From Fimbriosthenelais zetlandica (taxonomy: Eukaryota), in assembly GCA_977030845.1 (NCBI GenBank), contig OZ365112.1:5766001-5830000 (forward strand): DNA of 64,000 nucleotides, written 5' to 3'. The notes under the pieces were generated by a model, which searched no databases, had not been told where the DNA came from, and was given only the letters and a program-made list of their open reading frames with translations. Positions within the stretch are counted from its first letter, which is position 1; the number at the start of each line of letters is the position of its first letter. The translations under genes were made by a program, and so were the position numbers. Below are positions 52,857 to 55,800 of the stretch, in pieces.

Positions 52857-55800
52857 TTATCGTGTTGCCATGGAGACTTGCCATACTCGGATGAGGTTGT
52901 CTGTGTATCCGGCAAACAGTGTTTGGCCGTCAGCGGACCAAGCGAGGCAGATGCACTGAGGAGGTTCAGCCTTGGATGTAGGGCTGATTACCTCTTGACG
53001 AAGCTCATCAACCACAACCTTTCCTTCCAGATCCTGAAAAAGTGGAGCAAAAAATTGTAATTTCCAATTTTGTTTTTAATTTTTTTTTATTTAGAATATT
53101 TATACAGCCAAATTAAGAGGAGTTCACTAGGCTCACGGGGCATATAATTATATTACCAGTCATGATTTTCAGCCTATGGCTGTGTTAGTGCAGGAACTAA
53201 TTTTTAATGTGTTGGAACTACTCGTTTTATCTCGAGAAATCGTCATAGAACCAGAAGCCTTCAGATTTGGCTCAGAAGCTAATAAATGACAATGAATGTA
53301 ATCACAGGATTCCAGTTTTAAAAGAATCTAAAATTTAATTTAATACAGCAATATTTAAGCACGGAACCATAGAAACCTATTTCCTAACAGTTTTGGTTGT
53401 AGGCCAAGAAAGAGTATCTCAACTACTGTTTTAATTTTGTTTTAAGAAATCCTCATAGGACTAGGAGTCTTCAGATTAGGCTCAGAAGCTAATACATGTC
53501 TGAATAAATATAATCACAGGATTCCAGTTGTTTTAAAAGTATCTAAAAGTTAATTGATTATTCAATACAGGATTATTTATTCACAGAACCATAGAAAGCT
53601 ATTTCCTAACAGTTTCGGTTGTAGGCCTAGAAAGAGCAACGAGTATAGAAAGAAGTCTTCTATACTCGTTGGAAAGAGTATCTAAACTACTGTTTTAATT
53701 TTATGTTAAGAAATCCTCATAGGACAAGGAGTCTTCAGATTTTGCTCAGAAGCTAATACATGTCTGAATTAATATAATCACAGGATTCCAGTTATTTTAA
53801 AATTTAATTCAAGAAAAAATTTATTTATTTTAAGCAAAGAAACGTGCAAACAGTTTCGGTTGTAGGCCTAGAAAGATAATCTAAAGTACTGTTTTAATTT
53901 TTTGTTAAGAAATCCTCATAGGACTAAGAGTCTTCAGATTTGGCTCAGAAGCTAATACATGTCTGAATTAATATAATCACAGGATTTCTTTTATTTTTGA
54001 ATTAAATAATATTTGCTCCGTTATTTCATGACAGTTTTGGTTGTCTTTGACTAGCTATACTTTTTATACAGGGTGTTGGGGAAGACCAATATTAATAACA
54101 TTGACCAACTGTACCTGTCTAAAGATTTAATAAAAAAAAAAAAAAATACTTACCCAGATCTTGATGGAGGGTCCTGTGGCAGCACAGAGCCAGTAACGGT
54201 TGGGGGAGAAGCAGAGAGCATTGATCATATCTCCACCGTCCAAAGTGTACAGGTGCTTACCCTCATTCAGATCCCACAACATAGCCTGACCGTCCTGAAA
54301 ATCAAACCAACACCAGTGATTAAGCAATATATACAGTGACCAAGGATTTGAAAATTATGAGTTTCAAATTTGATTTAAGAAAGTCAATTCAAGGTAATTC
54401 TCAAAATTGTCTTGTATTTAGTTTATATATGCGAGGTTAATATGCGTTATTGTAAATATTTGTTATAGTTATCTACTATAAAATTTCGAAAATCTTTTGT
54501 TAAATGAAACTTTAACTAGGATAAATAGAAGATTAAAAATTACCTTGCCACCAGAGGCACAGAGGGAGCCATCGGGGGAGACGGTGACACAGTTGAGGTA
54601 TCCGGTGTGGCCGATGTGGTTGGTCTTTAGTTTACAGTTGGTAAGGTTCCACACCTTGACCAGCTTTTCCCAGCCGCAGGAGACGATGATTGGGTTCTGT
54701 GTGTTGGGCGAGAAACGCACGCACGACACCCACTCCCTGTGGCCCTCATCCTGCAAGAGAAAAAAATATTTTATTTATATGAAGTTTGAGGTGAAGACAG
54801 CTTCCTTCATATCCCCCCCATGTCCAATTTATGCAGAGAATAAATCCCCCCCCCCCCCCCCCCTTCTGAATGAAACCCTGAGTGCCTACCTGGATGGTGT
54901 ATTTGCAGACACCGAGTGTGTTCCACAGCTTGATGGTTTGATCCCTGGATCCAGACACAATCTGACGGTTGTCAGCAGAGAAAGCTACACTGAGCACGTC
55001 CTTGGTGTGTCCGACAAAACGGCGGGTGGTGGTGCCACTGAGAAATCAAAAATCACATTATAATGTCCATTCGTTTACAAAATGTTACCTGGCTCATGTA
55101 AAATATAAATTTTATGACCTCATAATTGCAGGACATCTGTCTTCATAGATTTACTCAATGTGTCGTTAATCATCGGCCTTGATATTTTCATCTTATTTTC
55201 ATTTATTTTGTGGTTTGAGATTTAAAACATTTGGTTAAAATAGATTATTATTGGACCTCATAATTGCAGGACATCTGTCTTCATAGATTAACTCAATGTG
55301 TCGTTAATCATCGGCCTTAATATTTTCATCTTATTTTCATTTATTTTGTGGTTTGAGATTTAAAACATTTGGTTAAAATAGATTATTATTGGACCTCATA
55401 ATTGCAGGACATCTGTCTTCATAGATTAACTCAATGTGTCATTAATCATAGGTCTTGCATTCATCTTCATTTTTGTAGGTATGATACTTTACAACTTATG
55501 TTATCTCACAGACAAAATTATGTTTTATTTTAAACAAAATATTTTAAACATTGTCAAAATATAAATAAATAACCTCATAATTGCAGGACATCTGTCTTCA
55601 TTGTGAAACTCAATGTGTCGTTAATCATAGGTCTTCCATTTATATTTGTGGGCTTGATATTTTACAAATTATGGTCTCAAACATTTAGAATGCATTAAGT
55701 TGGTTTAAAATAAAGATACATACGTGCTAAGGTCCCATAGGCGCAGAGTATGGTCCCAGGATCCTGAGAGAGCAAACTGGCCATCAGAGGACATGACAAC

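Follow-up and report, generated by a model that had tools for sequence, protein, structure and literature searches.

A RACK1-hosted box C/D snoRNA family, expanded to four copies in Fimbriosthenelais zetlandica and predicted to guide methylation of the U169 equivalent of 18S rRNA

Within the window, a stretch of 64,000 nt from Fimbriosthenelais zetlandica (contig OZ365112.1, positions 5,766,001 to 5,830,000), we identified a box C/D guide family present in four copies within an intron of RACK1, three of them intact and the fourth decaying; from its sequence, the family is predicted to methylate the equivalent of human U169 in 18S rRNA. We place the probability of this reading at roughly two in three. 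The host gene lies on the minus strand and has six coding exons, with GT/AG at every exon boundary:

56772-56664, 55895-55724, 55037-54890 and 54750-54544, minus strand: RACK1 exons 1-4, coding, GT/AG
54154-54294, minus strand: RACK1 exon 5 (DGQAMLWDL...GPSIKIW)
53034-54153, minus strand: host intron, the fifth and last of RACK1, 1120 nt, GT/AG
52857-53033, minus strand: last RACK1 exon, ending ...VWQVSMATR and the stop codon

Copy 1 starts 165 nt past the 5' splice site of this last intron, and copy 4 ends 202 nt before its 3' splice site. The C-terminus of the encoded protein (...VWQVSMATR) resembles that encoded on other invertebrate contigs. The units themselves, each read on the same strand as their host, are as follows:

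53909-53988, minus strand: copy 1, 80 nt; stem GAAAUCC/GGAUUUC fully Watson-Crick, boxes and guide intact, 95.6 bits with model R2
53945-53961, minus strand: D' guide CAUGUAUUAGCUU plus D' box CUGA of copy 1, 17 nt
53710-53789, minus strand: copy 2, 80 nt; stem GGAAUCC/GGAUUUC, intact
53746-53762, minus strand: the same 17 nt of guide and D' box in copy 2
53446-53525, minus strand: copy 3, 80 nt; 5' stem arm GGAAUCC, intact
53482-53498, minus strand: the same 17 nt of guide and D' box in copy 3
53236-53313, minus strand: copy 4, 78 nt, apparently degenerating; guide G to U, 2-nt deletion, C:C mismatch

Each unit opens with a 7-nt stem arm (GGAAUCC; GAAAUCC in copy 1), a single U, the C box GUGAUUA and 25 nt that end in the guide, and continues with CUGA (D'), 8 nt, CUGAAGA (C'), 11 nt, AUGA (D) and the 7-nt stem arm GGAUUUC. 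The C box thereby sits near the 5' end and the D box near the 3' end, the two being joined by a 7-bp terminal stem, which is the layout of a box C/D RNA. Guide and D' box are identical across copies 1-3, which on comparison vary at only 6 of 80 columns: two each in the D'-C' loop and the D-side antisense slot, and one each in the stem and in the gap between C box and guide. The stem variant turns a G-U pair into A-U, and the other five fall outside the boxes, the guide and the stem; the terminal stem is present in the minimum-energy fold of all three copies. In copy 4 the deletion lies upstream of the guide, the C:C mismatch adjoins the D box, and the terminal stem is missing from the centroid fold; from these changes this copy looks like a pseudogene in decay.

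The starts of successive units are spaced 199, 264 and 210-212 nt apart, and the intervening spacers are rich in indels. As these spacers are also 79-85 % alike, the array is recent. Tandem Repeats Finder did not report the four units, which are dispersed repeats inside one intron and form no head-to-tail array. The first-pass annotation had described four tandem units of ~76 nt in RACK1 intron 5, with the segment before D' invariant in three of them: the exon ends and GT/AG dinucleotides do put them in the fifth (and last) intron, the number, the stems, the C, D', C' and D boxes and the invariant guide all held, whereas the head-to-tail arrangement gave way to units starting 199-264 nt apart, and the length to 78-80 nt including the stem. 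Two features of the spacers were also recorded. A block reading CUAGGCCUACAACC, G or A, then AAACUGUU is repeated on the minus strand 45-70 nt downstream of each copy, at the following positions:

~53848-53870, 53608-53630 and 53380-53402, minus strand: spacer block
54030-54044, minus strand: weaker occurrence of the spacer block

Considered as a second small RNA, this block (CUAGGCCUACAACCGAAACUGUU) was rejected, as it folds no better than shuffled sequences. The spacer after copy 2, and that one only, additionally contains a 35-nt near-perfect palindrome (53637-53671, minus strand; 15-bp hairpin, z -4.1), which breaks up the conserved spacer block and resembles a small insertion or footprint.

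Both boxes depart from consensus. The C box carries U at position 6, where the consensus RUGAUGA has G, and the D box carries A at position 1, where CUGA has C. In the kink-turn, C-box position 6 pairs with D-box position 1, so the G-C pair has become U-A; on established kink-turn geometry, the UGAUUA/AUGA combination would thus replace the canonical G6-C1 pair in a compensatory fashion. The C' box CUGAAGA is degenerate. The same UGAUUA/AUGA pair was found in most of the RACK1-hosted C/D RNAs that we inspected in other invertebrates.

When metagenome contigs were scanned with the pattern 'C box, gap, guide plus D'', only two were returned, both of them encoding RACK1 and both with a single unit after the ...GPSIKIW exon. 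A fourth species was reached without the pattern, via a protein match to exon 5, and the homologues are:

JAAUXW010105000.1 (L002), 301-221, minus strand: unit found by the pattern scan
JAAUYG010115267.1 (L003): unit found by the pattern scan
JARPNT010035905.1 (L009), 1193-1270: the L003 unit unchanged, on nearly identical sequence
L015 588-670 (locus also represented by L016 and L017): unit of the fourth species

The L015 unit sits in the RACK1 intron before the GPSIKIW exon, whilst a SNORD96-like RNA fills the intron after it; its D' box is UUGA, with the register as in the other three species. Homologues are therefore single per RACK1 gene in at least three other invertebrate assemblies, compared with the four copies in the window. 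The family is thus not specific to this genome, and the search of RACK1 introns in related taxa suggested by the first-pass annotation proved fruitful. The distribution is patchy among the RACK1 loci sampled. No family member was found in L004, L011-L014 or L018, where the introns at this place are short, free of snoRNAs or occupied by other C/D RNAs, and in L005, L006 and L008 the equivalent intron holds SNORD95-like RNAs instead.

Invariant over the four species are the C box UGAUUA, the D' guide CAUGUAUUAGCU, the D' box CUGA or UUGA one base on, and the D box AUGA, with a guide core of 12 nt. In an alignment of seven sequences the invariant elements are UGAUUA, CAU followed by a position changed in copy 4 and then UAUUAGCU, the UGA of D', and AUGA, together with three scattered A residues, of which one precedes the guide and two belong to the D'-C' loop, and the stem C that adjoins the C box; all other columns differ. 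The antisense slot upstream of box D, GACUCUUAGUCCU, varies among both copies and species, and probably has no conserved target. The terminal stems, in contrast to their sequences (GGAAUCC/GGAUUUC, GGUGC/GCACC, CCUGUCC/GGACAGG and UUGCC/GGCAA), are maintained: across the four species 91.8 % of cells are paired vs 66.2 % in shuffles, and six of the seven pairs have changed on both sides, values that were not attained in any of 500 shuffles; slid stem registers give 14-53 % pairing. An arm-swap test on six species-level sequences covering both guide types described below (window copy 2, L002, L009, L001, L005 and L008) gave five of five inner pairs when a 5' arm was combined with its own 3' arm, against a mean of 3.3 between species. 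A functional C/D snoRNA working through its D' guide would be expected to show such a pattern. Judged by this observed anatomy, conservation and stem covariation, the units are a real, conserved and unannotated box C/D snoRNA family, expanded to four copies here.

The window contains no 18S sequence of its own, and a search of viral contigs for a eukaryotic 18S found none. For the target we used the 18S segment GGUAAUUCUAGAGCUAAUACAUGCC, which we take to be human positions 155-179 and assume to be conserved in this species; across the predicted site the sequence is presumably GGUAAUUCUAGAGCUAAUACAUGC. The letters at human A159, A166, U172 and C174 of the assumed segment appear to fit the register that we used, and the segment also fits both guides of the Rfam SNORD45 consensus. 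Against it, the D' guide is complementary to GAGCUAAUACAUG over 12-13 bp, the last pair falling one base before CUGA or UUGA; an rRNA-complementary stretch of at least 10 nt thus lies beside D', given this version of 18S. Predicted duplexes of the intact copies with the assumed segment have energies of -16.7 to -17.8 kcal/mol, and that of copy 4 reaches -11.0 vs -17.8 kcal/mol. Counting upstream from D', the fifth guide base is in each of the four species the one that pairs with the U of AGCU in 18S, the equivalent of human U169. The pairing with 18S and a site 3 nt 5' of that of SNORD45, both anticipated by the first-pass annotation, are in agreement with the predicted duplex, its register and the SNORD45 consensus. 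The methylated human 18S residues known to us in this region are A159, A166, U172 and C174, with no U169 amongst them. Our literature search found no paper on rRNA methylation in annelids or molluscs. For Drosophila, a RiboMeth-seq table passes from Am28 of 18S to Gm393 with no site between (PMC11014333), and the region is thus unmethylated there. In yeast, according to one study, unusual C'/D' motifs let some snoRNPs also methylate a neighbouring base, a shift of one or two positions (PMC5389607); on that account, the predicted site is uncertain by a base or two.

Comparison with Rfam 15 at gathering thresholds returned no family for any of the four units, in keeping with their earlier description as unrecognised. 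The best permissive matches were to U54 (24.1 and 23.2 bits; cut-off 40) and to plant snoR77Y (up to 23.8 bits; cut-off 52), and both identities were rejected as these sub-threshold matches reflect boxes and layout only. U54 (SNORD54, RF00206) is the best sub-threshold match in three species at 23-27 bits (23.2-24.1 in the window, 23.2-27 in L002 and L003), and its consensus shares with the units the GUGAUU and AUGA boxes and the D'-C' spacing; its guide AUAUACGCUAUU, however, aims at another 18S region, and the units neither reach 40 bits nor carry that guide. SNORD45 (RF00279; threshold 42 bits) did not appear even at E ≤ 10 in a search of positions 53200-54020 (821 bases). Like the units, it is an intronic box C/D RNA with a D' antisense element, CAUGUAUUAG, complementary to the same 18S stretch. 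In SNORD45, however, D' directly follows ...AUUAG, which addresses U172, whereas the units have three more bases and pair U169 at the +5 position in all four species. SNORD45 additionally has a D guide against 18S A159 (UCUAaAAUUACa directly before CUGA), and the units have none upstream of box D; its boxes are canonical where those of the units are UGAUUA/AUGA. The units are hosted by RACK1, unlike vertebrate SNORD45, whose host is RABGGTB. A candidate A159 guide in intron 4 (AGAAUUACC, 54393-54401) has no C box or stem nearby and was for that reason read as a chance match.

The host is an invertebrate, and SNORD95 and SNORD96, the vertebrate RACK1 snoRNAs against which the units had originally been compared, are thus the wrong yardstick; neither shows an Rfam match to, nor shares a guide with, any of the four units. 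RACK1 does contain five SNORD96-like C/D units on the minus strand of introns 1 and 2 (one at 56033-56100, four within 55116-55652), with boxes AUGAUUA/AUGA and the guide AUGUCCUGCAAUU directly before AUGA. Rfam SNORD96 (RF00055) scores only 17.2 bits (cut-off 43) on one of these copies, and standard annotation would therefore miss them. They resemble the units in the UGAUUA/AUGA pair and in a similar C' (UGAAGAC), whilst none of the four units contains the SNORD96 D guide GUCCUGCAAUU. In other invertebrates, two more C/D families hosted by RACK1 were seen (L002 1701-1772, minus strand, and L004 5811-5882, plus strand; L013 3905-3980 and 4725-4801, plus strand), with guides GACAUUUGAAAC before UUGA and UAUACUCAAGUUU before CUGA, and GUGAUUA or AUGAUUA with AUGA as boxes. 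RACK1 thus seems to host a set of paralogues that share this box pair.

Several other features of the window were recorded in passing. Its only match at the Rfam gathering level is a tRNA (40389-40459, minus strand), which adjoins a 247-aa ORF (39338-40081, plus strand) whose relatives carry GIY-YIG domains (PF01541) and which, judged by that similarity, is probably a mobile-element remnant. A weak snR13-like C/D match with a UGAUGA box (50620-50727, minus strand; 23 bits, cut-off 47) lies in an intron-like stretch downstream of RACK1. A sub-threshold mir-3661 match (57279-57362, minus strand; 31 bits, cut-off 77), near the first exon of a divergent PP2A catalytic-subunit gene (57255-57392, plus strand), is probably due to chance.

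A k-mer scan of other RACK1 loci for relatives of the guide revealed a second guide type, in which GCAUGUAUUAC is followed directly by CUGA (CUGC in L001), in units of 72-73 nt:

L001 8950-9021: U172-type unit
L005 5215-5286: U172-type unit
L006 5216-5288 (also in L007): U172-type unit
L008 3505-3577: U172-type unit

In these units the +5 base pairs with U172 by duplex prediction, the register being that of the Rfam SNORD45 consensus (GCAUGUAUUAg before CUGA). They share with the U169 type their host, layout and antisense core CAUGUAUUA, and mostly also the AUGA D box and UGAUU within the C box, and both types are sub-threshold in Rfam (L001, which has canonical boxes, scores 24.3 bits with SNORD45; cut-off 42). 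The difference lies in the end of the guide, which is ...AUUAC before CUGA and addresses U172, where the other type addresses U169. A covariance model built from the U169 type only finds three of the four U172-type units (L005, L006 and L008) at 25-30 bits (E 1e-4 to 2e-3), with L001 below detection at E 5. The two guide types were not found together in any one RACK1 locus in the stretches sampled. Directly downstream of the U172-type unit of L006 (5288-5346; also in L007, diverged in L005) is a near-perfect hairpin, AAAGCUCAGCAUUAC...GUAAUGCUGAGCUUU, with weak matches of ~22 bits to several miRNA models; it could represent either an inverted repeat or an intronic miRNA.

Since RACK1 elsewhere hosts a sister guide in the SNORD45 register for U172, the family is not unrelated to known guides, and is best interpreted as a SNORD45-like guide displaced by 3 nt. 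The simplest reading would be a single RACK1 lineage of SNORD45-like guides, in which an extra GCU between core and D' box would have moved the ruler from U172 to U169. More tentatively, and at somewhat less than even odds, the guide may have slid by three bases such that the ancestral methylation of the U172 equivalent was replaced or joined by one at the U169 equivalent in one invertebrate group. It is also possible that the family derives from a SNORD96 copy, as UGAAGAC, GUCCU and AUGAGG are common to both; the cross-species data, however, fit a relation to the U172-type guide better.

Three alternatives to methylation at U169 by functional units were weighed. The RNA might bind 18S here mainly as a folding or processing chaperone, or act on another RNA, without methylating U169, and it is generally known that some C/D snoRNAs work in this manner; the conserved element nevertheless stops exactly one base before D', which is the geometry of a methylation guide, and there is no other conserved part of the RNA to serve another function, making this explanation unlikely. 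We consider it quite unlikely that the guide has kept the U172 equivalent as its methylation target, with the extra bases merely lengthening the duplex or with an effective D' box 3 nt upstream of CUGA. To our knowledge, a three-base shift back to U172 would be unprecedented. The antisense core is indeed common to U172-type guides, and non-consensus C'/D' motifs do alter site choice in yeast, although the shifts reported there are of one or two nucleotides and not three (PMC5389607). Furthermore, the distance to a perfect CUGA (UUGA in the fourth species) is the same in each of the four species, the would-be D' box (CUUC; CUAU in L015) matches the consensus poorly and differs between species, and pairing of the three added bases with 18S AGC suits a guide rather than a box. 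Finally, that the units are non-functional products of tandem duplication, which look conserved because they are young, would suit the recent array with its similar spacers and the decay of copy 4, but is very improbable given that three other species retain the boxes and the guide despite divergence elsewhere, with compensatory changes in the stem, and that changes within the array avoid boxes, guide and stem pairing.

Under the preferred reading, that of a RACK1-hosted guide for the U169 equivalent, general snoRNA biology suggests that each unit would, after splicing, be trimmed to an RNA of ~80 nt protected by the C/D kink-turn and the terminal stem, and would be bound by the core snoRNP proteins (fibrillarin, Nop56, Nop58 and Snu13). 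A point against this scheme is that an animal intron with more than one snoRNA calls for processing steps in addition to simple debranching and trimming. The D' antisense element would then pair with its 18S complement, and fibrillarin would 2'-O-methylate the U of AGCU opposite the fifth guide base upstream of D'; we infer expression, snoRNP assembly, the identity of this species' 18S and the methylation itself from the anatomy and register described above. Compared with its sister, the U172 guide of the SNORD45 type, the RNA would in this way have a ruler displaced by 3 nt, owing to three additional bases before the D' box.

Maps of rRNA 2'-O-methylation exist for a few model organisms, and the family gives a precise and testable prediction of a methylated 18S uridine. 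Its practical value is modest, namely better snoRNA annotation outside vertebrates and insects. The findings also portray RACK1 as a gene that has long hosted snoRNAs, and whose paralogous RNAs acquired different guides while sharing the UGAUUA/AUGA box pair. The U172 guide of other invertebrates and the U169 guide, hosted by the same gene, form a natural contrast that could show guides and target sites drifting together. If the register shift is true, nature would here provide a clear example of an rRNA modification site that arose by a change of register and not from new antisense sequence.
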